A program made the position numbers and the translations under genes. 64,000 bases of DNA, taken from IMG/VR virus record IMGVR_UViG_3300042566_001512, positions 62,001-126,000 of that record. One strand, written 5' to 3'. Below the pieces are notes generated by a model, which saw nothing but the letters and a program-made list of their open reading frames with translations, was not told the origin of the DNA and did not search any database. Below, in pieces: positions 18,360-50,805 of this stretch; position 1 is the stretch's first letter; every line of letters begins with the position of its first letter.

Positions 18360-20399
18360 ATGTTTGGATCAATACGCGCAATTGCCGGCGTTATAAATGT
18401 ACGGGTTAGATCAGACGAAATAACCGTCTCTGGGGTATCTGCATACAGCATGCAAAGGGATATAAAACGGCTGTGGGGTACTGACAGGGTTAGCAAATAC
18501 ATGTTCACCGATATAAGTGGATATTCGTTTACGTTCAAGAGTTTCTTCTTGCCCGATGTAGTTTTTACTGTTAACAAGATGCTCAGTAATAAATCTACCG
18601 TGACTTCGCTGAGAACTCTAACTAAGATAAGAGATGCTTTATTTGAACATACCTGGCTAGCAGATACGGTACAGACTAAACCTGGCAGACTAAATCGCGA
18701 GTATCTGAGTGAGTTCTATCTCACTCCTTTAGACTTCCAAGAAGAACTCTTTAATATCTACGATCAAAATACTCAAAAGTATAGCCTAAGAGGCTTCTTG
18801 TTTGCCGGAAGCGTAGGATCCGGTAAGACTTTTACTTCTCTTGCCCTTGCTTACTGCCTAGGGAAAAAGAAAATAATCATTGTCTGCCCTAAGAATACTA
18901 TCTATAGAGTATGGGAAGCTAACCTAAAAGAAAAAATAAAAGTTACTCCCGAATACTGGATTTCTGCTGAGAATAAGCCCATGACTGGGGATGAGAGATT
19001 TCTAATCTATCATTACGAGGATATGGGTAAGCTGCAAAAATACGTCACTGGTAATACGGGAACGCATCCTAAAGATTTGATGATTATCTTAGATGAGAGC
19101 CACAACTTAAATGAGACAACCAGCGAACGATCTAATCAATTTAACATCGTTTGTAAGACTTCAGGGTGCAACGACATCCTCTGGCTCTCTGGTACTCCTA
19201 TAAAGGCCCTCAGTAAGGAATCTATACCGCTACTAAGATCAATTGATCCACTATTCACGCCGGAAGTAGAAGAACTCTTCAAAAAGATCTTCCGCGGTGA
19301 TGCAGGTAGAGCCACTGAGATCCTCAATCAGCGACTAGGCCTGATTATGTTTACAGTGGAAAAGGAGAGACTGAAGCTACCTGAGCCTATCACTAAGCAG
19401 ATTAAGGTCAAGTCTCCAATTGGTGATAGGTTTACTCTGGAGTCCATTGCTGCGCAGATGCAGGAATTCATCCAGCAACGGATGCTGTATTACAAGCACA
19501 GGCAATCTGAAGACGAGAAATTCTACGAATATTGTTTATCCAAATACGAGTCCACTCTAAAGGATAGTAAACAAAAAGCACAACTCAATCAATACAAAGG
19601 CTACGTCAAACGAATCATTGACGCTAACGCCAGAGACGTAAACGACGAGATGACCTTCTGTAATCGATTCGAGAAAGATGAGATTATGCCTGTTTTGTCT
19701 AATGAAGACAAAATTAGATTTAAAGATGTAAAATCCATAATTAAGTATTTGCATCTAAAGATAAAGGGCGAATGCTTGGGCACTGTAGTGGGAGGCGCAC
19801 GCATTGCCTGTACAGTAGAAATTGCTAAGAATATTAATTACAATCTAGTTTGTGAATCCGTAGAAAAGAAAACTTTAGTTTTCACTAGCTACGTCGATGC
19901 ACTTAGGCAGGCCAGCGTCACGTGCTCCCAACAGGGACTCAAGCCAATTGAGATCTATGCTAAAACTAATAAACACCTACCGGAGCTAATTAAGCGTCTC
20001 ATGGATGACGAATCAATTAATCCACTAATAGCCACTTTTGATTCTTTGTCCACCGGCGTACCCATGACCATGTGCAACGCTCTTTTGATGCTAAATCTAC
20101 CTTTTCGAGATTACGAGCTACAGCAGGCCATCGGGCGTATCTCTAGATTAGATTCTAATACCGACACCTACGTATACACCGCATTCCTGGATACTGGAGA
20201 TAAACCAAATATATCCACCAGGACTAAGGATATTTTAGAGTGGAGCCAGAAACAAGTAGAGGCCATAGTGGGTATCACTACCCCGTACGATCTCTCTAAG
20301 GCTAACGACGTTACTGACTTCAATGCCTCCATGGAATCTTTTAAAGAGTTCTATGATGGTTTTTCAATTTGTGATAAACCCGGTTACAGTTCTTGGTAA
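18360..20399 (+). CDS. SF2/SNF2-like helicase, probably virion-associated
   Basis: Walker A GSVGSGKT, DESH, LSGTP, STGV and QAIGRISR; C-terminal SME and PGYSSW. Confidence 0.85.
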   Translation: MFGSIRAIAGVINVRVRSDEITVSGVSAYSMQRDIKRLWGTDRVSKYMFTDISGYSFTFKSFFLPDVVFTVNKMLSNKSTVTSLRTLTKIRDALFEHTWLADTVQTKPGRLNREYLSEFYLTPLDFQEELFNIYDQNTQKYSLRGFLFAGSVGSGKTFTSLALAYCLGKKKIIIVCPKNTIYRVWEANLKEKIKVTPEYWISAENKPMTGDERFLIYHYEDMGKLQKYVTGNTGTHPKDLMIILDESHNLNETTSERSNQFNIVCKTSGCNDILWLSGTPIKALSKESIPLLRSIDPLFTPEVEELFKKIFRGDAGRATEILNQRLGLIMFTVEKERLKLPEPITKQIKVKSPIGDRFTLESIAAQMQEFIQQRMLYYKHRQSEDEKFYEYCLSKYESTLKDSKQKAQLNQYKGYVKRIIDANARDVNDEMTFCNRFEKDEIMPVLSNEDKIRFKDVKSIIKYLHLKIKGECLGTVVGGARIACTVEIAKNINYNLVCESVEKKTLVFTSYVDALRQASVTCSQQGLKPIEIYAKTNKHLPELIKRLMDDESINPLIATFDSLSTGVPMTMCNALLMLNLPFRDYELQQAIGRISRLDSNTDTYVYTAFLDTGDKPNISTRTKDILEWSQKQVEAIVGITTPYDLSKANDVTDFNASMESFKEFYDGFSICDKPGYSSW

Positions 20400-20539
20400 T
20401 CTTATTTATATGTCATAATAGCCAGGATAGTATCCTGGCTATTATGATTTAAATTGAATTCTATTTGTTTTTAATTACATATCACTTTATTGAATAAGGT
20501 ATTGTTATTCATCACTCAATCAACCCCAAAGGAATAACT

Positions 20540-20818
20540 ATGTCCAGAGAAGACGACCGCATCAACGACAGAACCAGTCCCTTGTACAGATTCACTTACG
20601 AGGAAGTACTGAAAGCAGTAAAGCGACGTGGGTGTGTTCTACAATACGTAAAAGACCAAACACCAGAACTATGTTTAGAGGCGGTGAAACAAAATGGCCA
20701 CGCCCTTCAATTCGTAAAAGAACAAACCCCGGAAATCTGCCTAGCAGCAGTGGAACGAAACGTACATGCTATCTATTGCGTTAAATACGAATACCTCGAC
20801 GTAGTAAAACTATTCTGA
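20540..20818 (+). CDS. DUF4116-like repeat protein, possibly truncated
   Basis: Tandem 'LQYVKDQTPELCLEAVKQNG' repeats. Confidence 0.65.
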   Translation: MSREDDRINDRTSPLYRFTYEEVLKAVKRRGCVLQYVKDQTPELCLEAVKQNGHALQFVKEQTPEICLAAVERNVHAIYCVKYEYLDVVKLF

Positions 20819-20997
20819 ATGTAAAGCTAATAGCAAAACATGATAAATATTGTTTGATTTATAAAAACGGTAAATACATGGCCTCTTGTGGTGGTCCTTG
20901 GACCGCGACTGGAAGCACTTGATCACTGGAATGAACGACACGTTAATCGGGAAAGATCTACGTTGTTTAGGAATGCTATTATAAATAACGTAGAATG
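20812..20997 (+). pseudogene. Frameshifted probable C-terminal continuation of the repeat protein
   Basis: The -1 frame reads ...KNGKYMASCGGPWTAT, then the original frame reads EALDHWNERH...NNVE*. Confidence 0.35.
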
Positions 20998-21287
20998 AAT
21001 AAAACTCATTGAAATTTATTATATACACATATTACATTGATACAATAGAGAGTTTAAAGACTTAATTATTTTCTTTTAATACATGAACTGTAATTAAAAT
21101 AATAAATATAGGGTTTTTTTGATAATTATATATCTATGATTTTTATAGAAAGGAAATAATAACTGAAAAGAAAAATCAGTAGACTGCGCACTCGGTAAGA
21201 TAATACAAATACCGATATAAGGAACTTAACGGTTTACTTAACTGTGAAGCAGCTAAAACTCATCAAACTTTATTTTGAAAGACAAAA

Positions 21288-21788
21288 ATGAAAAAGATAG
21301 TTACGTTTCTAATGTTGCTCATCATCAGCAGCTACACTTATGCATTCAGTGCAGACTGGATCGTTCAGCACACCAAGGGCAAGGTCAGATACGACCAAGC
21401 TGTAAAAATCGTTAATGCGGTATACAAGCACAGCTTTATTAACGAAGTGGACCCAGGCATTATCTTTAAGATAATCCAAACAGAATCAACTTACAACCCA
21501 AACGCAAAAGCAAGAACATCTAACGCCACTGGGTTGATGCAGATTATTCCTTATTGGCACAGGGATAAAATCAAAGGTCGTAACTTAAAAAATATCGATG
21601 TGAATGTTGAAGTGGGAGTAAAGATTTACAAAGAGTATCTGAATAAGTCAAACGGGAATGTGAGGAAGGCGCTTTGGAGGTATAATGCATCAACTGTCAA
21701 AAAACAGTACGCAAACAAAGTGTTGAGTATAAACGACACGGAAGTTTACGCTTTTGTAAAGCCACAAAGTAGAACAAAGGATGTCTAA
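21288..21788 (+). CDS. Lytic transglycosylase (SLT domain) with signal peptide
   Basis: IIQTES (catalytic Glu), ATGLMQI and ALWRYN; MKK plus hydrophobic leader. Confidence 0.9.
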   Translation: MKKIVTFLMLLIISSYTYAFSADWIVQHTKGKVRYDQAVKIVNAVYKHSFINEVDPGIIFKIIQTESTYNPNAKARTSNATGLMQIIPYWHRDKIKGRNLKNIDVNVEVGVKIYKEYLNKSNGNVRKALWRYNASTVKKQYANKVLSINDTEVYAFVKPQSRTKDV

Positions 21789-21853
21789 GTTATAACTTAG
21801 ACATTAGTACAAAGGCGTAGTAATTAAAAAATCCCATTGTATTTATTTTCAAA

Positions 21854-21868
21854 CACATATTCTAAATG
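21854..21868 (+). promoter_or_regulatory. Early-promoter-like motif
   Basis: CACATATTCTAAATG after an AT tract; near-identical copies at 22633, 25660 and 45855. Confidence 0.55.
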
Positions 21869-21897
21869 TGGTCCTGGTAAATATATCATCTACATTT

Positions 21898-22059
21898 ATG
21901 AAAAAAGTAAAGAAAGAAAAAGCACCGTCTCAATCTGAACATCAGCAAGTAGGCGTTATTGACATGAGCACCAAGGTTTATGAAATAACCCTCAACGAGG
22001 CAGGCAAGAAACTGCCGCCCGGTCGGTACGCTCTGTTTGCTTTGCCAAAGGAAAAATAA
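21898..22059 (+). CDS. Small hypothetical protein
   Basis: Stop overlaps the next ATG (TAATG); start site uncertain. Confidence 0.45.
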   Translation: MKKVKKEKAPSQSEHQQVGVIDMSTKVYEITLNEAGKKLPPGRYALFALPKEK

Positions 22060-22433
22060 TGGAACACATTCAATTCATCGCCAGCCACGTTATCGCTGCA
22101 TTTTTCGGTGCGGCGGTGTGCTTATTTGCAATGGTTCTGGACACCGCCTCAAAAGTAGAACCTGCCGACTTTTTCAATGAGGCTCCTAATGTGGAGTCTG
22201 AAAACCAATCCGTCACCGTAAAAGTGCTAGAAACAATCCGTTTGGATTCCAATAGCGAGATCAAAGAAGATCCAAACGGATTAACGGGGTGGAATCTATA
22301 CACAAACGGCGTGCATGTCAGAAGCCTAACAGATTTTGAGGAATCACTCGTGAAAGCTTCTATCTTGCAAACATGGAAGTTCACGCTACCGGAGCTTATG
22401 AGTGCTGAAAAAAAAGATAGCGTTATCTCATGA
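22059..22433 (+). CDS. Hypothetical membrane-anchored protein
   Basis: N-terminal TM segment; translationally coupled to the upstream ORF. Confidence 0.6.
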   Translation: MEHIQFIASHVIAAFFGAAVCLFAMVLDTASKVEPADFFNEAPNVESENQSVTVKVLETIRLDSNSEIKEDPNGLTGWNLYTNGVHVRSLTDFEESLVKASILQTWKFTLPELMSAEKKDSVIS

Positions 22434-22476
22434 ATTGAGAGAAAGTAAGTAAGGAGAGAAAGTAAGTAAGTTTAAC

Positions 22477-22552
22477 GGGACGTTAGCTCAGCGGTTAGAG
22501 CAGAGGACTCATAATCCTTTGGTCAGGTGTTCAAATCACCTACGTCCCACCA
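22477..22552 (+). tRNA. trnI-CAU: tRNA with CAU anticodon, most likely tRNA-Ile2 (Met not excluded)
   Basis: Full 76-nt cloverleaf GGGACGT...ACGTCCC-A-CCA with GAGGA-CTCATAA-TCCTT; D and anticodon arms resemble E. coli ileX; TilS gene nearby. Confidence 0.93.
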
Positions 22553-22704
22553 TTTTCATAATACCCAGGAAATAAATTTCCTGGGTATTATGCCTATTAC
22601 TATTTTTTTGCCAGATTATAATTATTTTTAGTAACATATTCTAAATGCGAACAGAAGCAAAAGCGCTTCTATTTCGACAGTAAAATATCAGAAAGGTTCT
22701 AACC

Positions 22705-22950
22705 GTGTCTCTAGTTTGCTCTGGTCAGAGTTTTACCGTATACGTAGATGTCAAAATTGAAGGCATTTGTACTATCCCCAACATTAACATCTACACAAAG
22801 GACCCAAGTATAGATGGCACCAAAGCGGCTTTCCTGAAGAGCATGGAGCAGTTTGCCAACTCTGAGCACTTTGCAAAAATTGTTTATGAGCTTGAGAATG
22901 GCTTTTGTATACATGTAATTCATACCGCTCACCTGGATATGCCAGGTTAA
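22705..22950 (+). CDS. Hypothetical protein
   Basis: GTG start after AAAGG, downstream of a promoter-like motif. Confidence 0.5.
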   Translation: MSLVCSGQSFTVYVDVKIEGICTIPNINIYTKDPSIDGTKAAFLKSMEQFANSEHFAKIVYELENGFCIHVIHTAHLDMPG

Positions 22951-22977
22951 ACAATAGTTTCAATAAAAGGAAAAAAC

Positions 22978-23334
22978 GTGGCCATTAAACCGCAAGACGT
23001 CGACAAATGCTTTGTCGACCTACCATGCATCCCCAGTGTCGATGAGTTGGAAAACTACATTGATAACAAGTTGTGCGATCCATTGTTTTTGAAAAAGTGC
23101 TATCAGCACACCCGGCTTAAACAACCTATCGAGCATACTCAAACGGTAAGTTACGAAATCAGACTGCCTGATGCAACCACGCCAGATTCTAAGACACTGA
23201 AGTTACTAGAGCAACGATACGTGGCAGCCGGATGGAACCAGCTTGCACTCGTATACGGATCGACTGAAAAAGACTTTTACGAAGTTAATCTGGTTCTCAT
23301 TCGGATTGTGGAGCCCGGCAAATACCGTATTTAA
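22978..23334 (+). CDS. Hypothetical protein
   Basis: AAGGA RBS with GTG start; 118 aa. Confidence 0.6.
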   Translation: MAIKPQDVDKCFVDLPCIPSVDELENYIDNKLCDPLFLKKCYQHTRLKQPIEHTQTVSYEIRLPDATTPDSKTLKLLEQRYVAAGWNQLALVYGSTEKDFYEVNLVLIRIVEPGKYRI

Positions 23335-23344
23335 TAGTTAAAGT

Positions 23345-23980
23345 ATGTCAAAAATTCATTTCCTGAGCAAACCCAACAAAGAAATCTATCTTGCGTTCTC
23401 CGGTGGCGTAGACTCGGTTGTTCTGCTACATACACTAATTCGTAGAAATTACAGTGTAGCACTACTTACCGTCGACCACGGTAATGAATTTGCTAAACAA
23501 GAAGTAGAGTTTTGTAAGAAGACCGCAAAGGAATTGGGATTAGAGTACAAGATATTTACTATTCCTGATTTTGATAAATCCACGTCACTTGAGGCGTTTT
23601 GGTCGAATCACAGGAACGACATTTTCCAAAAAATGGACAAGATGGTCGTGAGCGGGCATCATCTGAACGACGCCTGTGAATGGTACCTGATGTCCACTTT
23701 TCAAGGTACGCCAAAGCTTCTAGAGCACACCAACAGGAACGTGCACCGACCAATGATTACCAATACAAAGAAAGTCATCATTGAGTATGCTAATAAATAC
23801 AACTTGACGTACCTGACTGACCCCACTAACGCAGATACTACTTACAATCTAAGAAACAAAGTAAGAGCCGAGCTAATGGGAAGTGTAAAGAGTTGTTTTC
23901 CTGGTATTGAAACTACCGTGAAGAGACTCATCGTTAGAAAATATTTAAATAAAATGAAGTCGGTAGAAAATAGCATTTAA
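23345..23980 (+). CDS. tilS: Minimal tRNA(Ile)-lysidine synthetase (PP-loop domain only)
   Basis: AFSGGVDS PP-loop, VDHG, GHHLND, HRPM, YLTDPTN and RNKVR; 211 aa. Confidence 0.88.
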   Translation: MSKIHFLSKPNKEIYLAFSGGVDSVVLLHTLIRRNYSVALLTVDHGNEFAKQEVEFCKKTAKELGLEYKIFTIPDFDKSTSLEAFWSNHRNDIFQKMDKMVVSGHHLNDACEWYLMSTFQGTPKLLEHTNRNVHRPMITNTKKVIIEYANKYNLTYLTDPTNADTTYNLRNKVRAELMGSVKSCFPGIETTVKRLIVRKYLNKMKSVENSI

Positions 23981-24004
23981 TTTAAATACTATTTTCTTTA
24001 GGAC

Positions 24005-24562
24005 TCGGTGTTGAGGTAAAAAATATCTAGTTCAACATTGTTATGCGAGATAGTAAACGCAGGCACTGTCGTAATAACAGATCACAATAAATGCTCACCA
24101 ATAAAGCGCGGTTAAGTAAGTCACAAGCGAGCTTTATAACCATTACTACGTGTAATCGATTGTATTGCATGAGCGCTTTTTGGATCGTGGACAAATACTG
24201 TTGTGACTATGAAGACGGCATCCCATTTTTAATGGGGCAGCAAGTAATAGTGGAAAATTGTGGAAGTGCTGTCAAAAAACAGTATATAGGGCAACCAATC
24301 CCAGTCCCCGGGTTTAACCGTGCTTTAAAATAAAAAGCTAACTGGGGAACAGCTTGCTGTGTGAATTCTCCTAAAATTGATATGCTAAAAACGTATCAAG
24401 CCAAATACAAAGCAATTTGTAGAGGTAGTGAAATACAATAGGAGAGACCCATCTATACGTAACTAAGATCGGGTTGTAAGTATTTCAAGTCATGCTAGCA
24501 TGACTGTCCCTCTAGTGATAGAGGGTATCCTAATACATATTTAGAAAAGTATGTATTAGGAT
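24005..24562 (+). ncRNA. Candidate structured ncRNA A (~560 nt)
   Basis: Dense nested stems, two probable pseudoknots and a GCAA tetraloop, between tilS and the tRNA-Leu 5' half. Strand is inferred from context. Confidence 0.5.
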
Positions 24563-24569
24563 GCTTTGT

Positions 24570-24598
24570 GCGGGGGTGGTGAAATTGGTAGACACAAC
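24570..24598 (+). pseudogene. 5' half of an interrupted tRNA-Leu (acceptor strand plus D arm)
   Basis: GCGGGGG-TG-GTG-AAATTGGTAGA-CAC-A-AC; pairs 7/7 with the acceptor strand at 25618-25624. Confidence 0.85.
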
Positions 24599-24674
24599 CT
24601 CACTATTTCTTTTTCTATTTGATTTCAATCGCTTATCACTATAATGGTAGTATAAAATAGTGATTGGAGTTAAT

Positions 24675-25226
24675 ATGAAAAATGAATTACAAGAGAAGTG
24701 TAGTGTAAACGATAATGTTGCTTTAGATAAGAAAACTCTTCTGGGGTTATATCCAGAATACACATCTGTTCTTGGTCCCTACTTTAGACCGGACGGAAGA
24801 CAACACGTTATTTTAAATAATGCTAAAGCACCTAAAGGCACTAAAGATAAAACAAAAACTATATCTTACCCTAAGGCACTTAAAGAAGTTGAGTTAAAAG
24901 AAAAATTAAAACCTGATGAAACTGTAGATCATCATGATAGAGATTTTACTAATGACAAATTAAGTAATCTTAAGGTAAAATCTAAATCAATTCACGCGTC
25001 GCAGGATGCGCTTAGAGTTACTGTAAAGCCTATTAATTGTCCAGAATGTTCAAACCTTTTTACGCCTAACGTAAATCAAAGAAACAAACAACATGCCGGT
25101 AAAGGACAAGCTGGTCCTTTTTGTAGTAAAGTGTGTGTCGGTAAATACGGCGCAAGAGTACGAAATGAAGGCGTTATCTTAGAGAGAACGTCATTAGAAA
25201 AAACATATTATCGCATAGATAAGTAA
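24675..25226 (+). CDS. Free-standing HNH homing endonuclease with C-terminal Zn finger
   Basis: ETVDHHDRDFTNDKLSNL...H; CPEC...FCSKVC; GGAG RBS; lower GC. Confidence 0.85.
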   Translation: MKNELQEKCSVNDNVALDKKTLLGLYPEYTSVLGPYFRPDGRQHVILNNAKAPKGTKDKTKTISYPKALKEVELKEKLKPDETVDHHDRDFTNDKLSNLKVKSKSIHASQDALRVTVKPINCPECSNLFTPNVNQRNKQHAGKGQAGPFCSKVCVGKYGARVRNEGVILERTSLEKTYYRIDK

Positions 25227-25234
25227 TAAGCTAT

Positions 25235-25552: not shown

Positions 25553-25573
25553 ATATATTAAGAAAACAAAACA

Positions 25574-25628: not shown

Positions 25629-25712
25629 TTTAAAAAATCTGATTTTAATTTATTTCAATTATATATTCTAAATGTGAGTAATAACTACTCAAGTTTTAAA
25701 AGGAAACACAAA

Positions 25713-27325: not shown

Positions 27326-27331
27326 ATAAAT

Positions 27332-27408
27332 CTGTCTGTAGCTCAACTGGATAGAGCAGCTGCCTTCTAAGCAGCAGGTCGGGGGTTCGAGTCCCTCCAG
27401 ACAGGCCA
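27332..27408 (+). tRNA. trnR-UCU: tRNA-Arg(UCU)
   Basis: CTGTCTG/CAGACAG-G-CCA; GCTGC-CTTCTAA-GCAGC; TTCGAGT. Confidence 0.96.
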
Positions 27409-36389: not shown

Positions 36390-36490
36390 AGTAGTGAGCG
36401 TACCAGAGTAACTTTCGTTACTCTGGCGCTACGACTAATTTTTCTTTTTGTTTGAAATCCTGTGTACATTTACTCTATAAAGGAATATTG

Positions 36491-37075
36491 ATGGCAAAAG
36501 AGATTACATGGGACCCTAGGTTTGCTCCTAGTTATACACCTGAGGAAATGCTAAAATTAGGTGTATTTGAGGGCAAGTATATTAACAATATAAAGAGCAT
36601 TCCTGCTAGCTGGAAGAAGATACCAAAGGTGCTAGGTCCTAACGATGAACCAGATCCCACAATCAATAAGTACGGAGTAAAGTCACGGCAAGGACTCTCC
36701 GTATGGAAGAAGAATGGCTGGATAAAAACTGATAAAAATGGTTGGTTTTCTTGGTTTATAAATTATTATTTAGGACGAAGGCTAGGGCAGGAAGATGATT
36801 GGCAAATCGGTAGATGGAACTCTTTCGTAGCCAGACATCAGGGGCAAATAAATGCTGATCCTAAGAGTAAAAATAAAGACCATAGGCTAGCCCAAAAGCA
36901 GGCCTTGCTCCAGTGGGGTGTCGAGTGGAGCACCTCAATGACCTATGAACAGCGTCTTAGAAACGCAAAGCGTGTTGCTAAGTTGGCAGGTGTTTCGCTA
37001 GGCGAAGTCCTTGATAAGAAATCTATTTCTCAAGAAACTATTGTTATTGTTCCAAAATACACTGAATGGTTATAA
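36491..37075 (+). CDS. Conserved uncharacterised protein, probably head-packaged
   Basis: AAGGA RBS; TPEEMLKLGVF, GWFSWFINYYLGRR, QIGRW; ends SQE...PKYTEWL. Confidence 0.75.
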   Translation: MAKEITWDPRFAPSYTPEEMLKLGVFEGKYINNIKSIPASWKKIPKVLGPNDEPDPTINKYGVKSRQGLSVWKKNGWIKTDKNGWFSWFINYYLGRRLGQEDDWQIGRWNSFVARHQGQINADPKSKNKDHRLAQKQALLQWGVEWSTSMTYEQRLRNAKRVAKLAGVSLGEVLDKKSISQETIVIVPKYTEWL

Positions 37076-38426
37076 ATAATACCACGAATAATATTCGTGG
37101 TATTATGCTGTTACTTGTTTTTGTATTAATAAACAACTACATATTACTTATTTGATTTAACTTTAAATAGATGTAACATGTTAAAAGACACTTTTTTAAA
37201 TAAGCTAAAAGAAAATAACCTTACTCATCTTGAAAAATATGATTATTCCCTAGTACCAAATGAGTTTACCACTACCAGATATAGTAATAAAATTAAGATA
37301 ATTTGCCCTGAACACGGTATATTTGAACAAAATACACGCGCTCACCTGGCTGGCGCTGATTGCAGGCTATGTATAAGAAAACGCATTACCGATACCGCCG
37401 AGTCGTTTATTACCAAAGCCAAAATAAAACACGCTAACCGTTACGATTACTCTAAAGTCATTTATAAAAACAGTTCAACACATGTAATTATTGTTTGTCC
37501 TAAACATGGCGCGTTCATTCAGGTTCCAGGTGCCCACTTAAGCGGTAAAGGGTGTGCGGAGTGCGGAAAAGAAATTATGATGAGTAAGCTTAAGTCAACT
37601 AATGAGGAATTTATTTCAAAGGCCAAATCAAAGCACAGTGATAAATATAGTTATGATCTTGTAGACTATAAAAATAATGTTAAAAAGATAACTATTACTT
37701 GTCCCGATCATGGTAACTTTTTACAGATACCATCTGATCATTTAAGCGGTAGAGGTTGCCCGCAGTGTGCAAAAAATAGTTTTGCAGCTAAAATGAAATA
37801 CACCAATCAAGATTTTATAGAAAAAGCAAATTGTAAACATAATTTTAAATACGCTTATAATAAAGTAAACTATATAAACGACAAAATCAAAGTAATAATT
37901 TCTTGCCCAGTAAGAAACCACGGGGATTTTAGTCAAGTGCCTAATCAGCACCTGCATGGTCAGGGTTGCCCAAAGTGTAGAGAATCTTTTGGTGAAAGGT
38001 TTATTTCTCAAATTTTAGATAACTATAAAATCGATTATAAAAGAGAATATAAAATAAATGGATATAAGTACAAGTATGATTTTTACTTACCTAAATACGA
38101 TATCTATATTGAATATCATGGTAGACAGCACTATCACGCGATTAAGTATTTTGGTGGCGTTAAAGCCTTAAAATATATAAAAAGAAACGATAAAATAAAA
38201 GAAGAATTAATAAAGCGATCAACTGGAATGTTAATAGTTATTAAACACACGTTCAACACTTTTGGAAAAATCGAAGATGAGATACTAAGATTAATATCAG
38301 TAATACATCCTCCGTTTTTAAGTGATTTAAGCACGCTAGGGGCTTCTGTTGCTAATTCAAAAATATATTTAATTAATAATGGAATTGTGTATTTTAGAAA
38401 ATAATTTAATCCTTGCTCCAGTGGGG
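36903..38426 (+). mobile_element. Endonuclease element flanked by 16-bp direct repeats, carrying a replacement 3' end of its target gene
   Basis: CCTTGCTCCAGTGGGG at 36903 and 38411; homologous C-termini follow both copies. Confidence 0.7.
37178..38404 (+). CDS. Putative homing endonuclease with Zn-ribbon repeats and a PD-(D/E)XK/Vsr-like domain
   Basis: Four 'I.CP.HG.F.Q....HL.G.GC..C' repeats; ESFGE...YDFYLPKYDIYIEYHGRQHY. Confidence 0.8.
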   Translation: MLKDTFLNKLKENNLTHLEKYDYSLVPNEFTTTRYSNKIKIICPEHGIFEQNTRAHLAGADCRLCIRKRITDTAESFITKAKIKHANRYDYSKVIYKNSSTHVIIVCPKHGAFIQVPGAHLSGKGCAECGKEIMMSKLKSTNEEFISKAKSKHSDKYSYDLVDYKNNVKKITITCPDHGNFLQIPSDHLSGRGCPQCAKNSFAAKMKYTNQDFIEKANCKHNFKYAYNKVNYINDKIKVIISCPVRNHGDFSQVPNQHLHGQGCPKCRESFGERFISQILDNYKIDYKREYKINGYKYKYDFYLPKYDIYIEYHGRQHYHAIKYFGGVKALKYIKRNDKIKEELIKRSTGMLIVIKHTFNTFGKIEDEILRLISVIHPPFLSDLSTLGASVANSKIYLINNGIVYFRK

Positions 38427-38580
38427 ATGGGATTGGAAAGATTCTTTCACAGATGAACAGCTAGAAAAAAATGCTAAAAGAATATCTAAAATAGCAAATG
38501 TTACTTTGGATACTAAAACAGACAAGCTAGCAGTGGCAAAAGAATCATCTATAATTCTACCTAGTTATTTTAACTGGTAA
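38411..38580 (+). pseudogene. Orphaned alternative 3' end of the 36491-37075 gene
   Basis: LLQWGWDWKDSFTDEQLEKNAKRISKIANVTLDTKTDKLAVAKESSIILPSYFNW* aligns to the current C-terminus. Confidence 0.8.
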
Positions 38581-43780: not shown

Positions 43781-43801
43781 CGGCATAGAAAGTTTCTTTG
43801 A

Positions 43802-43833
43802 CATAAATAGGCGACACGTGTCGCCTATTTATG
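43802..43833. terminator. 32-bp perfect palindrome of the hairpin family
   Basis: CATAAATAGGCGACAC|GTGTCGCCTATTTATG. Confidence 0.65.
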
Positions 43834-43864
43834 AGTATTAACTGCTTTTTTTAATGAGATTAAA

Positions 43865-44653
43865 ATGGCTAATGAAAATTCTAAAAAATTGATGAAAATC
43901 AAAAACAAGGAACTCAAGGATCTAGTTGCCAGTTCTATAAATTCCATGACGCTTAGCCATCACAAAGAGCTTTTGCCGTTTATATTCCATCAATACGATC
44001 TAATTGAATATTACCAGTATTTTGATAAATTAAGTGATTTCTTTGTTAACCCGTTAAGTTCAGATAATCGCAGCTATCACAATAAGCTACACTCCCAGGC
44101 CGTATCGCTTAACTGCTACGAGGCCATCCATCATACGGAGTTGCCTATTAGTAAAGAGGATAAAAAGGCCATCCTACTAGCCTCGCTTTTTCACGACGCA
44201 AACCATTCTTACGGTCTATTGCAGGATTCCGCAAATATTAGCAACGCAATAACCGCGTTTAATAACGCTCACGATTGCGCAAAACACCAAGTTACTCAAG
44301 AAATAATCAAAAAGGCCAAAAAGCTAATTAAATACACACAGTACCCATACGTGGCCATGTCAAGGCACATAACCTGGCACTGCGCACTGGTTATTAGAGA
44401 CGCAGACATGATGATGGCGTACGAGCAGGACAGAGTTTGTGCCGACCTACATATTGGTTTATTTAACGAAATAAATAACTCTAGAGATCATTATTTTGAA
44501 CCAATAATGAAATTTAATTATTTTCTAGAAAACAATGAGCAATTTTTACAGAGAATTGTTTGGAACACTAGATGGGCAAAGAAAAAAGCGTTCAATCATA
44601 ATTTTCCACAGCGCGTTAAAAACATGAAAGCTTTGATCGAGTCGGCAAAATAA
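43865..44653 (+). CDS. HD-domain phosphohydrolase
   Basis: YHNKLH, LFHDANH and IRDADMM. Confidence 0.85.
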   Translation: MANENSKKLMKIKNKELKDLVASSINSMTLSHHKELLPFIFHQYDLIEYYQYFDKLSDFFVNPLSSDNRSYHNKLHSQAVSLNCYEAIHHTELPISKEDKKAILLASLFHDANHSYGLLQDSANISNAITAFNNAHDCAKHQVTQEIIKKAKKLIKYTQYPYVAMSRHITWHCALVIRDADMMMAYEQDRVCADLHIGLFNEINNSRDHYFEPIMKFNYFLENNEQFLQRIVWNTRWAKKKAFNHNFPQRVKNMKALIESAK

Positions 44654-44799
44654 ATAAAACGTTATAGGGTGCACGTTAAGGGTCAACCCTTAACGTGCAC
44701 CAATTATGTTTTCAATAAAATATTTATTTATAAAACAGCAATGCTGCTTTTAATATTCATTTATTTTAAATGAAAAAATCATAAGTTTATATATCAAAA

Positions 44800-45123
44800 A
44801 TGACTCAAATAACCAAAATTCGTACTTCAAAAAACTCTTTGCGAAAAAGCGGTAAATTTAACTATTGGTCAGCTGAGCAGGTCCTTGAAGATTTGCCTAA
44901 TTTCAACAATAGTGAATTTGTAAACAGGAATTTAAAATATTTGCTGACCAAGGCACAAGATCACAATGTGACAGTATACGCCGAGAAAGGGCTTTTTTAC
45001 CGCTTAGTATTTCCAGCAAAAAATATTTTACCACGTGAGAGCCTACGTGAAGGAAACGAAGTAATTGTCATCACCCAAAACCAACTCAAGGTTCTAGAGA
45101 TTAACATTGTTAGATTGAATTGA
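44800..45123 (+). CDS. Hypothetical protein
   Basis: 107-aa ORF. Confidence 0.55.
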   Translation: MTQITKIRTSKNSLRKSGKFNYWSAEQVLEDLPNFNNSEFVNRNLKYLLTKAQDHNVTVYAEKGLFYRLVFPAKNILPRESLREGNEVIVITQNQLKVLEINIVRLN

Positions 45124-45683
45124 AAAGGAATAACTATATGGGCGATTATTACGCAATAGCCACCAGGTTTAAACTGAAAAAAGATACACCAAAAACTATA
45201 GAAAGTTTTTTTGACGTTTTGTATGGTGCGGGAGGACAGTCGCGCGATATCGAACTACGCTCTAACGTGTTTTCTGAACAGCTAACAAGCATTGGAATTG
45301 ATATCGATAGCTTAGCGTCGTCCGTAAGACTCGTTAGCCTTTGTCACGATGCACACTGTGTGCGAGGTAAAGAAAATGACGTTTACTATTCATTTGCCTC
45401 AACAAAATACCCTCGTAAAGAATTATATCAAAAACTATTTACACAGATTCTCGATTATTTGGATGTATCGCAGGGCGACGTTTTATACACCCAAGTGTGG
45501 GAAGATAGTTCTGTAGAAGTGTTTTTGTATGTCGACCCTTCGCTAGAAGCCATAAGTTGCGCTGAGGCTAAACTTTACAAATACGAAGATGGGTATATGT
45601 TAGATGACACACACCCTTACAATCTTGAAAAAGGTGTAGATAAGCCTAAAATGAAAATAAACAATTTCTTTGATTTAGTCTAA
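45120..45683 (+). CDS. Hypothetical protein
   Basis: Probable start at the internal ATG after AAAGGA. Confidence 0.6.
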   Translation: MKRNNYMGDYYAIATRFKLKKDTPKTIESFFDVLYGAGGQSRDIELRSNVFSEQLTSIGIDIDSLASSVRLVSLCHDAHCVRGKENDVYYSFASTKYPRKELYQKLFTQILDYLDVSQGDVLYTQVWEDSSVEVFLYVDPSLEAISCAEAKLYKYEDGYMLDDTHPYNLEKGVDKPKMKINNFFDLV

Positions 45684-45866
45684 ACAATAGTAAATTCATC
45701 ATGGACGAGTTGTCAATTAAAGAGGCTTTATTTTTCCGGGAAATAGACGAATATCAGGCAAGTAGACTATACCGGATATTGTCTATATCTTTTTTACTGG
45801 ACAGGTTTACCTAATTAAATAAACAAATAATGTTATTTTTTATTTATTTTTAATCACATATTACAA

Positions 45867-46136
45867 ATGAGACATTCAGATAAAAACGCATTAGACTCTG
45901 AGCCCTGTTCAAAAATAATGGTAACGACCAAACTGTTTGACATTCATGCTACTAGTGTAAATAAGTTAAACGAAACACACTTCACGTATCCTGTCGAATC
46001 AAAACACACGCCCTTGCTTTATATGTTAAACCCGGTTGCCAGACTTTACAGATCTAATAAAATCTATTATTTAAAAAAGGTGCCCATTTACCGTAGTAGA
46101 CTTCCCTTTACGGGGTTTATTTTGGATGAGCTGTGA
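45867..46136 (+). CDS. Hypothetical protein
   Basis: 89 aa; start overlaps a promoter-like motif, so it is uncertain. Confidence 0.4.
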   Translation: MRHSDKNALDSEPCSKIMVTTKLFDIHATSVNKLNETHFTYPVESKHTPLLYMLNPVARLYRSNKIYYLKKVPIYRSRLPFTGFILDEL

Positions 46137-46163
46137 ATGTTATCAAGTGACATGGATATATAA

Positions 46164-48185
46164 ATGATAAACGCAAAACAGGAAATTGATAAGCTCAGAA
46201 AGCTTATTAAGTATCATAATAAGAAATATTACGTCGAGTCCGACTCCGTAATATCCGATGAAGAATACGATAAACTGTTTAGAAAACTACAGACTCTAGA
46301 GAAACAGTACCCAGAGCTCATAACAAAGAACTCGCCAACGCAGACAGTGGGCGCTAAAGCGTCTAAGACGTTCAAAACGGCCAAGCACACAGTGCCCATG
46401 CTCAGTCTGAAGACGGAAACGGATTATACGCAAGCTGGTGTTGATAATTTCATAACCAGACTAAGTCAAGAGTTAGGAGCGAACGATATGGCCTTTGTGA
46501 GCTATGTTGCCGAGCCTAAGTACGATGGCCTTGGCCTGGACATCACGTATTCTAACGGATCACTTACCCTGGCCTTGACCCGCGGCGACGGAGACACAGG
46601 TGAGGTGGTAACAGAAAACGCCAAGATGATACAGTGCGTGCCAGCGCTCATTAAGAGTCACGATAGACTGCCTATTAATCACCTACAGTTGCGCGGAGAG
46701 GTAGTCATGAGCAAGTACTCTTTCAATGAAGTAAACCAAGCGCTGCTAAAAAAAGGTTATAAAACCTATGTAAACCCACGCAACGCCGCATCTGGTGCAC
46801 TCAGGCAACTAGATCCTCTAGTAACCAAATCAAGAAAATTGAGTTTTTACGCATATAGCTTAATATCAGTAAAGCCCGATAGAAACTTCAAATCTCATTC
46901 TGAGCAACTGTCTTTCCTGGAGTCATTGGGGTTTACCTTATCTGAGGAGATACGAAAAGCTCAAAACGCAGAAGATCTTAAACAATACCACGAAAAGCTA
47001 TATTCAATACGGAAAGATTTGCCGTATGAGATAGACGGCGTCGTGTATAAGGTAGATTCTTTAGATCACCAGAAAAGGCTAGGTTTTGTTTCCCGTGAAC
47101 CAAAGTGGGCGGTGGCGCATAAGTTCTTGGCTCCTGAGGAAAAAACCAAACTTATAGCAATAGACGTACAGGTGGGCAGAACGGGAAAGCTCACTCCTGT
47201 TGCTAGACTGGACCCCGTGTTTGTATCTGGTACGACAATAACCAATGTAACTCTGCACAATGTTTTTGATCTAAGGTCCAGAAAAGTTCGAGTCGGCGAT
47301 GAAGTATACGTCAGAAGAGCCGGCGACGTTATTCCGGAGATCACGGGCCACGTGCAAGACGCACGTATGGGCTACTATCGCAATTTTAGTATGCCGAGTA
47401 CCTGCCCGGTTTGTAGTGGTCCTGTAGAGCGTCAGAAGGGCTCCAGAGAGTACCGCTGCACCAATAAACTATCCTGCCCTGCTCAGTTAATAGGCTCTAT
47501 AACGCATTACGCCAGTAAGAAAGCAATGAACATAGAGGGTCTTGGCGACAGGACAGTGGAGTGTTTAGTAAACAATAATCTTCTTTTTAACATAACCGAC
47601 ATTTATCGCCTTTTCGATAAAAGACAAGAACTCTCTAAGCTCGAAGGGTTCGGTACTAAAACAATAGAGAATCTGTTTGGCGCCATACAGAAAACAAGAT
47701 CTTGTTCATTCTCTAAATTTCTTTATTCACTGGGTATCCCAAATGTGGGGGAGAACACGTCAAAGATATTGGCAAGTCGATTCGCCGACCTTAACGACCT
47801 AAAGGCTGCTAGTTTAGACGAACTAAAACAAATACCTGATATAGGACCCATTTGTGCAAAAAGCATAATTGGTTTTATGTCTAGCAAAGGCTTTGAGGTG
47901 GCCCGCCAGTTATATTTTTCCGAATTAAATATCGAAAAAAATATTAAAATAATTACAAACAAACTACAAGGTAAAACTTTCGTAATAACCGGTAGCTTTG
48001 CGCAAGTTGATCGGGAAAAATTAAAATTGGAAATAGAGAAAAACGGCGGAAAAGTTTCTGGTACAGTAAATAAAAACACCGATTATCTTGTGGCCGGAGA
48101 GAATGCCGGATCTAAGTTAAATAAATCAAAAGAGCTGAATGTAAAAATAATAGATTATTACTTTCTAAAAGGAATGTTGGAATGA
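46164..48185 (+). CDS. ligA: NAD-dependent DNA ligase
   Basis: EPKYDG, TRGDG, NPRNAASG, EIDGVV, RAGDVIP, CPVC...C...C Zn finger, HhH and BRCT. Confidence 0.97.
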   Translation: MINAKQEIDKLRKLIKYHNKKYYVESDSVISDEEYDKLFRKLQTLEKQYPELITKNSPTQTVGAKASKTFKTAKHTVPMLSLKTETDYTQAGVDNFITRLSQELGANDMAFVSYVAEPKYDGLGLDITYSNGSLTLALTRGDGDTGEVVTENAKMIQCVPALIKSHDRLPINHLQLRGEVVMSKYSFNEVNQALLKKGYKTYVNPRNAASGALRQLDPLVTKSRKLSFYAYSLISVKPDRNFKSHSEQLSFLESLGFTLSEEIRKAQNAEDLKQYHEKLYSIRKDLPYEIDGVVYKVDSLDHQKRLGFVSREPKWAVAHKFLAPEEKTKLIAIDVQVGRTGKLTPVARLDPVFVSGTTITNVTLHNVFDLRSRKVRVGDEVYVRRAGDVIPEITGHVQDARMGYYRNFSMPSTCPVCSGPVERQKGSREYRCTNKLSCPAQLIGSITHYASKKAMNIEGLGDRTVECLVNNNLLFNITDIYRLFDKRQELSKLEGFGTKTIENLFGAIQKTRSCSFSKFLYSLGIPNVGENTSKILASRFADLNDLKAASLDELKQIPDIGPICAKSIIGFMSSKGFEVARQLYFSELNIEKNIKIITNKLQGKTFVITGSFAQVDREKLKLEIEKNGGKVSGTVNKNTDYLVAGENAGSKLNKSKELNVKIIDYYFLKGMLE

Positions 48186-48571
48186 AACTGCAAATCAAAA
48201 CACTTAGAGCTGCAATTGTTGGTTACTTTCTTAATTTAATTTATTATTTTAAGAAAAGCAATAATCACGAATCTGTAAAAATGGAAGATCCTCCGTTAGT
48301 GGAATATAACCAGAGTGAACCGGAGGTTATGCAAGAGACTAATCAATCGGAAAATCCCATAATGATTGATATTAAACAGATAGTGCGTATCACATCGGTG
48401 AGAACCGTTAAAGTCGTGGAGCACCATTATCTAGCTGTTAGTTTTGATGGACAGCCACCGACGATGCTGCAGGTACCTAAAGACGATCTATCTGATTTTA
48501 CGATAGGCAAAGAGTTGATAGTATTGCCCGGTGGACTGCATCCCCTGAATCGAGCACCGGTTGTCCATTGA
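48182..48571 (+). CDS. Hypothetical protein
   Basis: ATGA overlap with ligA. Confidence 0.6.
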   Translation: MKLQIKTLRAAIVGYFLNLIYYFKKSNNHESVKMEDPPLVEYNQSEPEVMQETNQSENPIMIDIKQIVRITSVRTVKVVEHHYLAVSFDGQPPTMLQVPKDDLSDFTIGKELIVLPGGLHPLNRAPVVH

Positions 48572-48633
48572 CGCAGTGACAAAATAAATACGGGGGGTTG
48601 CTCCCCCCTATTTTGACCAATAGGAGTATTCTA

Positions 48634-48822
48634 ATGGGCAAGCTTTTAATAAATCTTATTTTGATCTTTTTGTTTGTTTGGGTTGTAATTATCGCATTTG
48701 TTCCAATAGTAAAGGTCATATTTGCGGTAATTGTGGCCATACTGAGTGCGGTATTTTCAATCTTTTTCTACGTGCTTATATTTGCGATGGTGGTGGGTAT
48801 TGTTTTGTCATTGCTAAAATGA
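48634..48822 (+). CDS. Small highly hydrophobic membrane protein
   Basis: AGGAG RBS; two TM segments. Confidence 0.6.
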   Translation: MGKLLINLILIFLFVWVVIIAFVPIVKVIFAVIVAILSAVFSIFFYVLIFAMVVGIVLSLLK

Positions 48823-49109
48823 TGGAAAAATATACACCCCGCGCCTATTCCTTTGGCGGTACTGCTGCTCTAAACGTTGATTCTGTGGTATTGCTAAAAA
48901 ACGCGTACAAAAGAAGGCTACTTAAGATTAATGAAGATATACGAAAATGCAGGAAAGAAAATAGAGAAACAAAGACATTAAATGCTAAGAGAAAAATTGT
49001 TAATAGACAATTTAATCTGTTAGATCAGATGCAAAAGAAGTTCAACCCAGAATGCGTTGGTCAAAAAAACGCATACTTTAAACTGTTAGACCTTTACAAA
49101 AATGACTGA
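48819..49109 (+). CDS. Basic hypothetical protein
   Basis: ATGA overlap. Confidence 0.55.
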   Translation: MMEKYTPRAYSFGGTAALNVDSVVLLKNAYKRRLLKINEDIRKCRKENRETKTLNAKRKIVNRQFNLLDQMQKKFNPECVGQKNAYFKLLDLYKND

Positions 49110-49413
49110 AAAAATTTACTCGCACCTTCCTGCAGATCGGACCATAGTTTACACCGATAGGGAACTGGCCGTTTTTAAATACACTGTGGACGACGCACTG
49201 GAGGCGGCAAGGTCCATTCAAATGGACCGGACAGGTTCGCAGCTCAAGTTTGCTGATCGACATAAGAAACGGTATTCTCTGGTAAGCGGTTCTAAACTGA
49301 ACATCTCTCAGCACAACGCCGTCATTGCTGACGTCCTTCATCACGAAGCAGAGTATTCGCGTAGAGCTCAACATCTAGAGCCGGTAAACCGATTTCATTC
49401 CCCCAGGTATTGA
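49102..49413 (+). CDS. Hypothetical protein
   Basis: Coupled 103-aa ORF. Confidence 0.55.
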   Translation: MTEKIYSHLPADRTIVYTDRELAVFKYTVDDALEAARSIQMDRTGSQLKFADRHKKRYSLVSGSKLNISQHNAVIADVLHHEAEYSRRAQHLEPVNRFHSPRY

Positions 49414-49446
49414 TATCTAGATAATCTTTTTAATTAAAGATTAAAC

Positions 49447-49482
49447 GTCATATAGCCCCTGGTACACCAGGGGCTATATGAC
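49447..49482. terminator. Hairpin between convergent genes
   Basis: GTCATATAGCCCCTGGT-AC-ACCAGGGGCTATATGAC. Confidence 0.75.
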
Positions 49483-49491
49483 AATCAACAT

Positions 49492-50805
49492 TTACCAGCC
49501 GGCATAGTTAGGGATACTTTTGCCGTAACTCAGTAAAGCGGCGCAGAGCCGTTTTTGCTTATTGTACTCAACGGGATCTATTTTGTTTACTGTGAAGTTT
49601 TTTTCTTGATCAACAGATCCTTTGTGTTTGTCTCTGTCGAACTTTACAACCGCAAAATAAAAACCTTTTTCTAAATAAATATTTGGGCTAAATTTAATGC
49701 CTTCTTGTTTGTGTATTTCGATATATAATTCAAAAGTAGGAGAAGGTAAACTGCCGGATACTGACTCGTATGTTATTTTCGAAACAAATAGTTTACCTAT
49801 TTTTCTAGGAACATATTCCGCTGTTTCTTTGTTGTAGTACACTAACCAATGTTCTTGACTTCTCTGTGAATCGAACACTAGCTTTTCGTTTGGAAACAAG
49901 CAGTGGTTAAAAGACATTTCGCAAATGTCGTAACCTCCCCTAAATCCTGTTTTATCTAAAGTATTTTGTTTTGTTCCGGAAATCAAATCGTCCTCTGCTC
50001 TGGCGTAGCCTATCAGACATCCGATTATATTTGGTGATACTGTAATTCTGGCAGTGGTGTTATTTTCATTTTGCGCTGCAGAACGAGGCATCATTGGTAT
50101 GAATTTATCTGGAGTTTGTTTGTCTATATGTAGCATATAGTCCTGACCCAGTTCCTGGGAGCTTACTATTTTACTATTAGACTGAACTTCTTTAGACTGT
50201 AGACTAAACCATTTGTAAAAATCATCTCTATCTGCATCTGGCAACTGCTCCTGCGATTGAGTGGGGTGCTCTAACCCGAATTGATAACTTTCTTGAGAGA
50301 CGCTAGTAGTTGGTTTTTGTTTATAACTATACATTATCTTCTGTTTCCAAGTTGTGGGAACTTCGTTTAGAGTTATGTCAACTACTTGTACCGTATCCCA
50401 CATTTGCAAGAATTTATCTAGCGAATAAACTACTGGCAGCCCAAACTGTGCAGAAGTCACGTCGTATACGGTGTCACCTACCAGCACCACAACGTGACCG
50501 CCCCTGTTGGATAACTTATTTCCGTTATTAATGAATTGCTTTTTTACTTTACCGTGAAAATCGTTCGACGTTGGAAAGTTTTCAACTAGCTTCTTAAAAT
50601 GTAATTTAGACGAGTTACCCATAGCGTTGTCGCTTAGGTATTTTCCGTACAGAAGTTTATATTCTATTTTAAGTTGTTTTAATTTCTCTGTTAAAAGAAT
50701 ACTGGCAGCAGCGCAATATCCAAGACCGGAGTTTTTGACAAAGCGCTCGTCGTTTTTCTTTAGCGAAAAAATTAAATTTGTAATAGTTGTTTTATGGTTT
50801 CTCAT
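49492..50805 (-). CDS. Two-domain protein: transglutaminase-like N-terminus plus jumbo-phage virion-type domain
   Basis: GYCAAAS / GGHVVVLV / VYDVT putative triad; SQES-GLE linker; ends PNYAGW. Confidence 0.5.
   Translation of the reverse strand: MRNHKTTITNLIFSLKKNDERFVKNSGLGYCAAASILLTEKLKQLKIEYKLLYGKYLSDNAMGNSSKLHFKKLVENFPTSNDFHGKVKKQFINNGNKLSNRGGHVVVLVGDTVYDVTSAQFGLPVVYSLDKFLQMWDTVQVVDITLNEVPTTWKQKIMYSYKQKPTTSVSQESYQFGLEHPTQSQEQLPDADRDDFYKWFSLQSKEVQSNSKIVSSQELGQDYMLHIDKQTPDKFIPMMPRSAAQNENNTTARITVSPNIIGCLIGYARAEDDLISGTKQNTLDKTGFRGGYDICEMSFNHCLFPNEKLVFDSQRSQEHWLVYYNKETAEYVPRKIGKLFVSKITYESVSGSLPSPTFELYIEIHKQEGIKFSPNIYLEKGFYFAVVKFDRDKHKGSVDQEKNFTVNKIDPVEYNKQKRLCAALLSYGKSIPNYAGW

Follow-up and report, generated by a model that had tools for sequence, protein, structure and literature searches.

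The 64,000-nt stretch of DNA analysed here (hereafter the window; positions 62,001 to 126,000 of IMG/VR virus record IMGVR_UViG_3300042566_001512) belongs to a giant phiKZ-like phage and encodes an SNF2/SF2 helicase, a 194-aa protein of unknown fold (the 36491 protein), an orphan frame homologous to the end of the latter, a two-domain protein on the minus strand (the 49492 protein), and the major capsid protein (Table 1). The helicase matched Pfam ResIII, SNF2-rel_dom and Helicase_C as well as phrog_62, and tblastn gave 37-43% identity to chimallivirus helicases; its best blastp hit in phiKZ, in a search run in this direction only, was the ORF annotated PHIKZ203. We therefore regard it as the ortholog of phiKZ gp203, 201phi2-1 gp300 and RAY gp131. 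The 36491 protein had 1256 database homologs but no Pfam, PHROG or PDB fold match, and its AlphaFold2 model (pLDDT 88.6) ends in 20 disordered residues. The 49492 protein (AlphaFold2 model, pLDDT 86.4) combines a C-domain belonging to phrog_5043 (6e-29) with an N-domain of predicted papain-like fold, the latter resting only on Atlas leads to Tox-PL-2, transglutaminase and deamidase folds.

Table 1 Features of the window, and the protease encoded outside it
Coordinates	Strand	Feature	Details
18360-20399	+	SNF2/SF2 helicase	679 aa; proposed tail-bearing cargo
20328-20336	+	S-M-E, candidate prohead-protease cleavage site	residues 657-659, 20 residues before the C-terminus
20379-20396	+	Helicase terminal tail, P-G-Y-S-S-W	followed by the stop codon
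36491-37075	+	Protein of unknown fold, tail-bearing cargo candidate	194 aa; starts at the ATG at 36491 (listed ORF begins at a TTG at 36452)
37028-37036	+	S-Q-E, candidate cleavage site	residues 180-182, 12 residues before the C-terminus
37052-37069	+	Terminal tail, P-K-Y-T-E-W	followed by one more residue (L) and the stop codon
37178-38404	+	Free-standing HNH/DUF723 homing endonuclease gene	between the working end and the orphan end of the 36491 gene
38410-38580	+	Orphan 56-codon frame	A-K-E followed by 11 residues, the last six being P-S-Y-F-N-W
49492-50805	-	Two-domain protein, tail-bearing cargo candidate	437 aa; N-domain 1-167, C-domain 190-432
50239-50304	-	Inter-domain linker, predicted disordered	residues 168-189; S-Q-E, G-L-E and S-Q-E
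49495-49512	-	Terminal tail, P-N-Y-A-G-W	stop codon at 49492-49494
54609-56804	+	Major capsid protein, ortholog of phiKZ gp120	731 aa; blastp to the phiKZ 747-aa ORF at 118268-120511
195477-196229 (genome)		Prohead maturation protease, phiKZ gp175 / Peptidase S80 family	outside the window

The initial annotation had noted that the helicase, the 36491 protein, its orphan former end, and the 49492 protein share a C-terminal x-x-E ... P-x-Y-x-x-W pattern, and we confirmed all four C-termini. One correction applies: in this phage the 49492 protein lacks an S/A/G-x-E site just before its tail, although most of its homologs possess one. The orphan frame is homologous to the last 57 residues of the 36491 protein (BLOSUM62 local score 142) and was recovered at 2e-28 by a profile built from that protein, with a 16-nt identical stretch marking the junction. 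The intervening gene matched Pfam DUF723 and phrog_559 (8e-64), and no group I intron was found by Rfam.

To assess whether the shared tail exceeds chance, we counted P-x-[YFW]-x-x-W over a greedy set of 239 non-overlapping ORFs of the 208.8-kb genome. The pattern occurs 8 times in 63,204 residues, and five of these occurrences sit at an extreme C-terminus, where 0.017 were expected from composition, 0.023 from the internal rate, and 0.037 from shuffling the last 30 residues (Poisson P about 1e-11, or about 3e-9 if the orphan is not counted). The tail-coding DNA shares only 7-13 of 18 bases between genes, so the tails are not recent DNA copies of each other. Of note, the fifth terminal hit is carried by the prohead maturation protease, which matched phrog_3014 (4e-83), shows 35% identity to phiKZ gp175 over the full length, and has homologs carrying PF20034 (Peptidase S80).

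The tail is also kept across relatives. Among protease homologs, 118 of 120 end in W, with P at position -5 in 114 and Y, F or W at -3 in 107, and the tail aligns together with an invariant Glu about 28 residues upstream across phiKZ gp175, 201phi2-1 gp268, FLC9, and PhiEaH1. Of 120 homologs of the 36491 protein, 114 have W within the last four residues and 77 have P at -5; in 82 of the 114 W-ending homologs, the last Glu before the terminal W has S or A at P3 and lies mostly 6-12 residues upstream. Likewise, 36 of 37 homologs of the C-domain of the 49492 protein end in P-x-aromatic-x-x-W or a close variant, and two-domain homologs carry A-M-E, S-M-E or A-L-E at the place of the linker sites of the 49492 protein, in whose own model the linker pLDDT falls below 50. 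In one phrog_5043 homolog an extra domain is inserted, yet the A-x-E site and the tail stay at the very end. Most helicase orthologs, including those of Goslar, RAY, Noxifer, Proteus phage 10, FLC9, phiKZ, and 201phi2-1, carry tails of the same type. The motif is, however, degenerate—the Noxifer and Proteus phage 10 helicases lack the P and phiKZ-type tails lack the W—and the BONAISHI helicase, RAY gp169, and the Proteus phage 10 phrog_5043 homolog are tail-less, so that the tail is not obligatory for these families.

phiKZ and 201phi2-1 lost the final W in both the protease and the helicase, and over 10 phages the cross-family tail similarity was 5.16 within a phage against 1.39 between phages, a value reached by only 17 of 20,000 permutations. 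Homologs of the 36491 protein in Cobetia phage Carin-5 and a Flavobacterium phage lack the tail, and no gp175-type protease was found in those genomes, while homologs in pVa-21 and BONAISHI, which do have the protease, carry it.

The initial annotation inferred a removable C-terminal label that loads cargo into the prohead, and the independent lines of evidence we could bring support this reading. In SPN3US, a protease lacking the last 26 residues of its 64-residue C-terminal propeptide (245(am66)) is catalytically active but is not found in proheads, from which the authors conclude that this region carries the packaging signal (PMC7411985); autocleavage of the propeptide has been documented (PMC10052503). 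phiKZ gp203 is processed, packaged, and DNA-associated (bioRxiv 10.1101/2025.11.23.690004), although the text consulted does not say at which end it is processed, 201phi2-1 gp300 was detected by virion mass spectrometry, and RAY gp131 is annotated as virion-associated. Neither the 36491 protein nor the 49492 protein is known to be a virion protein anywhere. Moreover, 13 of 14 mapped cleavages in SPN3US remove N-terminal propeptides and 42 head proteins are uncut, arguing that the C-terminal tail can only be a minor route used by a few proteins.

Taken together, we consider it likely, albeit without direct data for this phage, that P-x-aromatic-x-x-W at the free C-terminus is a short linear prohead-targeting peptide of phiKZ-like (nucleus-forming, Chimalliviridae-type) jumbo phages, carried by the protease at the end of its C-terminal propeptide and by a few unrelated proteins: the gp203-type helicase, the phrog_5043 protein, and, in this lineage, the 36491 protein. 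In the proposed sequence of events, the flexible tail, which has low pLDDT in both AlphaFold2 models, binds a common site inside the assembling head, and its bearer is thereby enclosed. This site could be on the major capsid protein, the core or the scaffold, but binding has not been shown, and a complex prediction of the capsid protein with the last 40 residues of the protease gave no verdict. The activated protease would then cut after Glu at the S/A/G-x-E site usually found 6-28 residues upstream, releasing the tail peptide while the mature protein stays in the head to be ejected with the DNA; in the 49492 protein, further cuts in the linker would free the predicted papain-like N-domain. 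That the tail is the signal, and that it is removed from the cargo proteins, is inferred.

More tentatively, the tail may be a portable, self-removing cargo-loading peptide common to phiKZ-like jumbo phages, which binds one pocket on the inside of the assembling head, co-evolves with that pocket in each lineage, and suffices to load any protein into the capsid for delivery into the next host cell. In this view, which is possible but not established, evolution has used it repeatedly to recruit new enzymes (a helicase, a papain-like enzyme, a protein of unknown fold) as injected cargo by adding a linker, a Glu site, and the tail.

Other explanations appear less likely. The tail might be a docking (exosite) motif for the protease itself, with substrates using it to recruit the enzyme and the protease's own tail mediating self-association or autoinhibition until it is cut off. 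All bearers or their families indeed have protease-type Glu sites close to the tail, and the protease removes its own propeptide; yet the truncated SPN3US enzyme still cleaves substrate in vitro but fails to enter proheads, which points to targeting rather than catalysis, and the abundant known substrates (capsid protein, portal, inner-body proteins) use N-terminal propeptides and were not among the tail bearers in our genome scans. It is similarly unlikely that the tail directs proteins to the site where proheads assemble or capsids dock (the inner membrane or the surface of the phage nucleus), with enclosure following from proximity. A terminal Trp with neighbouring aromatic and Leu/Met residues could be interfacial, but six residues with a conserved Pro and a strict position at the free carboxyl end look like a peptide ligand for a protein pocket, and a generic membrane anchor would not require tails to co-vary within each phage. 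Less likely still is a hub-binding or import signal unrelated to the head, such as one for entry into the phage nucleus or for binding a replication hub. This would suit a helicase; helicases normally act on replicating DNA, and the genome, being syntenic with phiKZ, belongs to the nucleus-forming group; however, the protease that carries the tail acts in the head, helicase orthologs are found in virions, and the phrog_5043 gene sits next to the protease gene in Proteus phage 10 (between the gp176-like gene and the protease gene) and RAY. Finally, although the motif is short and has three internal matches in the proteome, coincidence or a compositional effect of C-termini is refuted by the counts; conservation in hundreds of homologs in four unrelated families and retention of the tail in two ends of one gene that are otherwise only about one-third identical also speak against it.

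If the prohead-targeting reading holds, the motif would identify accessory enzymes injected with the DNA—candidates for early, pre-nucleus functions or counter-defence—and offer a simple genomic rule for predicting head cargo in uncultured jumbo phages, as well as a handle for loading foreign proteins into their capsids, as the T4 capsid targeting sequence (CTS) did for T4. [quoted passage not shown] In the HK97 gp4 protease and the herpesvirus protease and scaffold (UL26 / UL26.5), a C-terminal tail appears to bind the HK97-fold capsid protein and so enclose its bearer, and in herpesviruses it is probably severed about 25 residues from the end, closely paralleling the Glu site about 28 residues from the end of the protease here. 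The herpesvirus tail seems to be shared through nested in-frame genes, whereas here it sits on unrelated proteins encoded by separate genes, and there is no sequence similarity. Encapsulin cargo-loading peptides are likewise, to a first approximation, short disordered C-terminal motifs shared by unrelated enzymes; they appear to dock on the inner face of an HK97-fold shell (binding to the shell protein is not shown here), but they differ in sequence and are presumably not cleaved off, and their shell is not a virus head, whereas this genome encodes the portal, terminase, and tail genes of a phiKZ-like phage and cleavage-type sites precede the tail. Among the closest known systems is the C-terminal propeptide of giant-phage prohead proteases (SPN3US gp245, phiKZ gp175, 201phi2-1 gp268), the same protein family and region, removed by autocleavage after Glu, with its last 26 residues dispensable for catalysis in SPN3US, and proposed to have a targeting role (PMC7411985, PMC5694885, PMC10052503). 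The papers we could read infer targeting roles for long N-terminal propeptides and for this region but treat the latter as a feature of the protease alone, stating that it is the only SPN3US head protein with a C-terminal propeptide; they define no motif, and we found no description of the shared motif in the literature we could search. Here, a defined six-residue terminal motif is shared between the protease and three other protein families.

The contig analyzed here spans 208,807 bp in a single piece, and its ORFs are syntenic with phiKZ over most of the genome. The helicase and the protease have their best matches in nucleus-forming jumbo phages (Noxifer, FLC9, 201phi2-1, PhiPA3, Goslar, and RAY), identifying the genome as that of a phiKZ-like jumbo phage with no close cultured relative. 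A megablast of the helicase region against the phage collection found nothing, and we consequently relied on searches at the protein level; close relatives, with up to 91% protease identity, exist only as metagenomic contigs. Of note, relatives of the 49492 protein (a tail-bearing protein, see below) and of the protease (database proteins P0129 and P0200) lie on a 216-kb contig that NCBI labels as a Rhodoferax MAG. This is likely a jumbo-phage contig binned with a bacterial genome, and it hints at a possible host group.

To assess the C-terminal tag that the initial annotation had noted on unrelated proteins, we re-read the ends of the helicase, the 36491 protein (a protein without a Pfam domain, named after the start of its gene), its orphan former end, and the minus-strand 49492 protein, and found all four exactly as described. 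Over a set of 239 non-overlapping ORFs (63,204 residues), the pattern P-x-[YFW]-x-x-W occurs eight times, with five occurrences lying within one residue of a C-terminus, against an expectation of 0.017–0.037 depending on the null model (Poisson P about 1e-11). The DNA encoding the tails is no more similar between genes than the shared residues require. Two further ORFs are of note: a 158-aa ORF without a homolog in the six comparison phages ends in P-M-F-V-Q-V-S-W, which resembles the tail but has two extra residues and may thus represent a further bearer, whereas the ribonucleotide reductase small subunit (phrog_86) also ends in W, yet without the P-x-aromatic-x-x-W spacing. As C-terminal tails of this enzyme are known to bind the large subunit, the latter is probably unrelated. 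Coordinates of these and other features—among them an NAD-dependent DNA ligase gene (phrog_3869 at 1e-198) lying between the tail-bearing genes—are compiled in the table below.

Coordinates of the features discussed in this section
Feature	Reference	Coordinates	Strand
Ribonucleotide reductase small subunit (phrog_86)	window	14589-15593	
Helicase region used for the megablast search	window	18360-22000	
tRNA-Met (CAT)	window	22477-22552	
tRNA-Arg (TCT)	window	27332-27408	
Homing endonuclease cassette with both ends of the 36491 gene	window	36899-38580	
Working end of the 36491 gene	window	about 36940-37075	
14-bp stem hairpin	window	37076-37106	
Orphan end of the 36491 gene	window	38410-38580	
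NAD-dependent DNA ligase (phrog_3869)	window	46164-48185	
49492 protein	window	49492-50805	-
158-aa ORF with a tail-like end	genome (outside the window)	9112-9588	
Two ORFs matching one phiKZ ORF	genome	46134-48240	
Four ORFs matching one 1451-aa phiKZ protein	genome (outside the window)	187141-192841	
1451-aa phiKZ protein	phiKZ	181802-186157	
gp176 ortholog	genome	194629-195357	
Prohead maturation protease	genome (outside the window)	195477-196229	

The orphan frame is homologous to the last 57 residues of the 36491 protein, and a homing endonuclease cassette (HNH/DUF723) has been inserted into the 3′ part of this gene. The working end and the orphan end are diverged duplicates that meet at a 16-nt identical stretch; although only about one-third identical, both keep the [S/A]-x-E site and the P, Y, and W of the tail. 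We considered whether the endonuclease might reside inside a group I intron. However, there was no Rfam match in the window, and since both ends encode the same protein segment, this is a duplicated gene end rather than two exons. A perfect 14-bp stem hairpin (–16.6 kcal/mol) directly after the stop codon of the 36491 gene is probably a terminator that separates it from the endonuclease gene. Moreover, several database homologs of this gene are about 310–350 aa long and one carries an HNH domain (PF13392), so that the gene seems to be a frequent homing target. Elsewhere in the genome, four separate ORFs (583, 477, 280, and 66 aa) all match one 1451-aa phiKZ protein, and at a further locus two ORFs match one phiKZ ORF; these large genes appear to be split here, perhaps by introns or mobile endonuclease genes.

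Importantly, the fifth bearer is the prohead maturation protease (phrog_3014 at 4e-83), whose homologs carry PF20034 (Peptidase S80). In an alignment with phiKZ gp175, 201phi2-1 gp268, FLC9, and PhiEaH1, the tail aligns and a Glu about 28 residues upstream is invariant. Among the 120 best database homologs, 118 end in W, and of those 118, P is at –5 in 114, Y, F, or W at –3 in 107, and L or M at –2 in 66. The nearest S/A/G-x-E site lies most often 28 residues upstream.

We next compared the tails carried by the different protein families in other phages.

C-terminal tails of four protein families in this and other phages
Phage	Protease	Helicase	phrog_5043 protein	36491-family protein
This phage	PSYMQW	PGYSSW	PNYAGW	PKYTEW-L (orphan end: PSYFNW)
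Noxifer	PSFMRW	TTFMGW	PPFMSW	–
FLC9	PAFLEW	PNWMQW plus 3 residues	PPHLQW	–
Goslar	SFNHW	PAFLEW	–	–
RAY	AHLRW	KAFSW	tail-less	–
Proteus phage 10	PAHLRW	TIFGW	tail-less	–
phiKZ	PGFMR	PAYMR-F	–	–
201phi2-1	PNWLR	PAYMR	–	–
pVa-21	PAAMKW	none found	–	PKSLGW
BONAISHI	RAMDW-R	tail-less	–	KPSDW
SPN3US-like SPLA3	GVRSW	none found	–	–

The loss of the final W in both proteins of the phiKZ/201phi2-1 clade, the Y at –3 in all five tails of the present phage, and the F-M in all three Noxifer tails suggest that tails track a phage-specific partner. To test this, we shuffled tails among phages within each family. The cross-family score was 5.16 within a phage against 1.39 between phages, a within-phage value reached in only 17 of 20,000 shuffles—with the caveats that the phages are related to each other and that the tails were entered by hand. 

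The 36491 protein has 1256 database homologs. Among the best 120, 114 have W in the last four residues, and in 82 of those 114 the last Glu before the W has S or A at P3 and lies mostly 6–12 residues upstream. Homologs in Cobetia phage Carin-5 and a Flavobacterium phage stop soon after the conserved core and have no tail, and we found no gp175-type protease in those genomes. In contrast, the pVa-21 and BONAISHI homologs have the tail, and those phages have the protease.

The C-domain of the 49492 protein (phrog_5043) has 37 homologs, of which 36 end in the tail, often just after S-x-E. One of them (database protein P0137) has an extra domain of about 120 residues, with a D-G-G-H-R stretch reminiscent of ParB/sulfiredoxin-type folds, inserted between the phrog_5043 domain and the tail, yet the A-x-E site and the tail are still at the very end. 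In Proteus phage 10 the gene lies between the gp176-like gene and the protease gene, and in RAY directly upstream of the protease gene. The RAY and Proteus phage 10 versions end where the others have the cleavage-type site and so look like the processed form. The C-domain is not a diverged phiKZ gp176, as the hhalign probability was 0.1% and the true gp176 ortholog is encoded elsewhere in the genome.

AlphaFold2 models predicted well-folded bodies and low-confidence tails for both the 36491 and the 49492 protein. In the latter, two domains are joined by a linker (residues 168–189), modeled as disordered, that holds S-Q-E, G-L-E, and S-Q-E sites; two-domain homologs have A-M-E or S-M-E there. 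Neither model found anything with Foldseek at E <= 0.001 (against PDB in the case of the 36491 protein), and the best VIA-align Z for the 36491 protein was 3.9. The N-domain of the 49492 protein (residues 1–167) has a Cys...His...Asp pattern, and Atlas searches gave leads to papain-fold families (Tox-PL-2, transglutaminase core, Gln deamidase) at scores of 0.89 or TM 0.47–0.58. These are leads only but, if real, would make this domain a candidate enzyme delivered with the DNA.

Published work fits with these observations. PhiKZ-type prohead proteases cut after Glu at S/A-x-E (A-x-E in SPN3US), and the protease removes its own C-terminal propeptide, which is 64 residues in SPN3US. The SPN3US mutant 245(am66), lacking the last 26 residues, makes an active enzyme that is not incorporated into proheads, and its authors propose a packaging signal in this region. 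PhiKZ gp203, the ortholog of our helicase, is described as non-essential, proteolytically processed, packaged into the head, and co-pelleting with the DNA. Likewise, 201phi2-1 gp300 was detected by virion mass spectrometry, and RAY gp131 is annotated as virion-associated. We found no description of a terminal motif shared by the protease and other head proteins in the literature searched, although it may be noted in the primary phiKZ and 201phi2-1 proteomics papers, which this search did not cover.

Taken together, the observation is confirmed and extended, and comparative and published evidence supports the inference of the initial annotation that the tag is a removable C-terminal label loading cargo into the prohead, an interpretation we consider probable in the absence of direct proof of packaging and cleavage for the cargo proteins. 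We propose that the flexible C-terminal tail docks on a common site in the assembling prohead—not identified here, since a complex prediction of the major capsid protein (731 aa) with the last 40 residues of the protease, for which no controls were run, returned no answer (score 0.00) and is no evidence either way—and so encloses its bearer. The protease would then cut at the upstream Glu site, the short tail peptide would leave, and the mature protein would remain to be ejected with the DNA. Given that most SPN3US head proteins use N-terminal propeptides, the tail is in this proposal a route for the protease and a few accessory proteins, not the general one. In the way it works, the proposed mechanism resembles four known systems: the T4 capsid targeting sequence, which is located at the opposite terminus; the C-terminal tail of the HK97 protease; the herpesvirus protease/scaffold tail with its maturation-site cleavage; and encapsulin cargo-loading peptides. 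It is, however, a member of none of them by sequence or by all their defining features.
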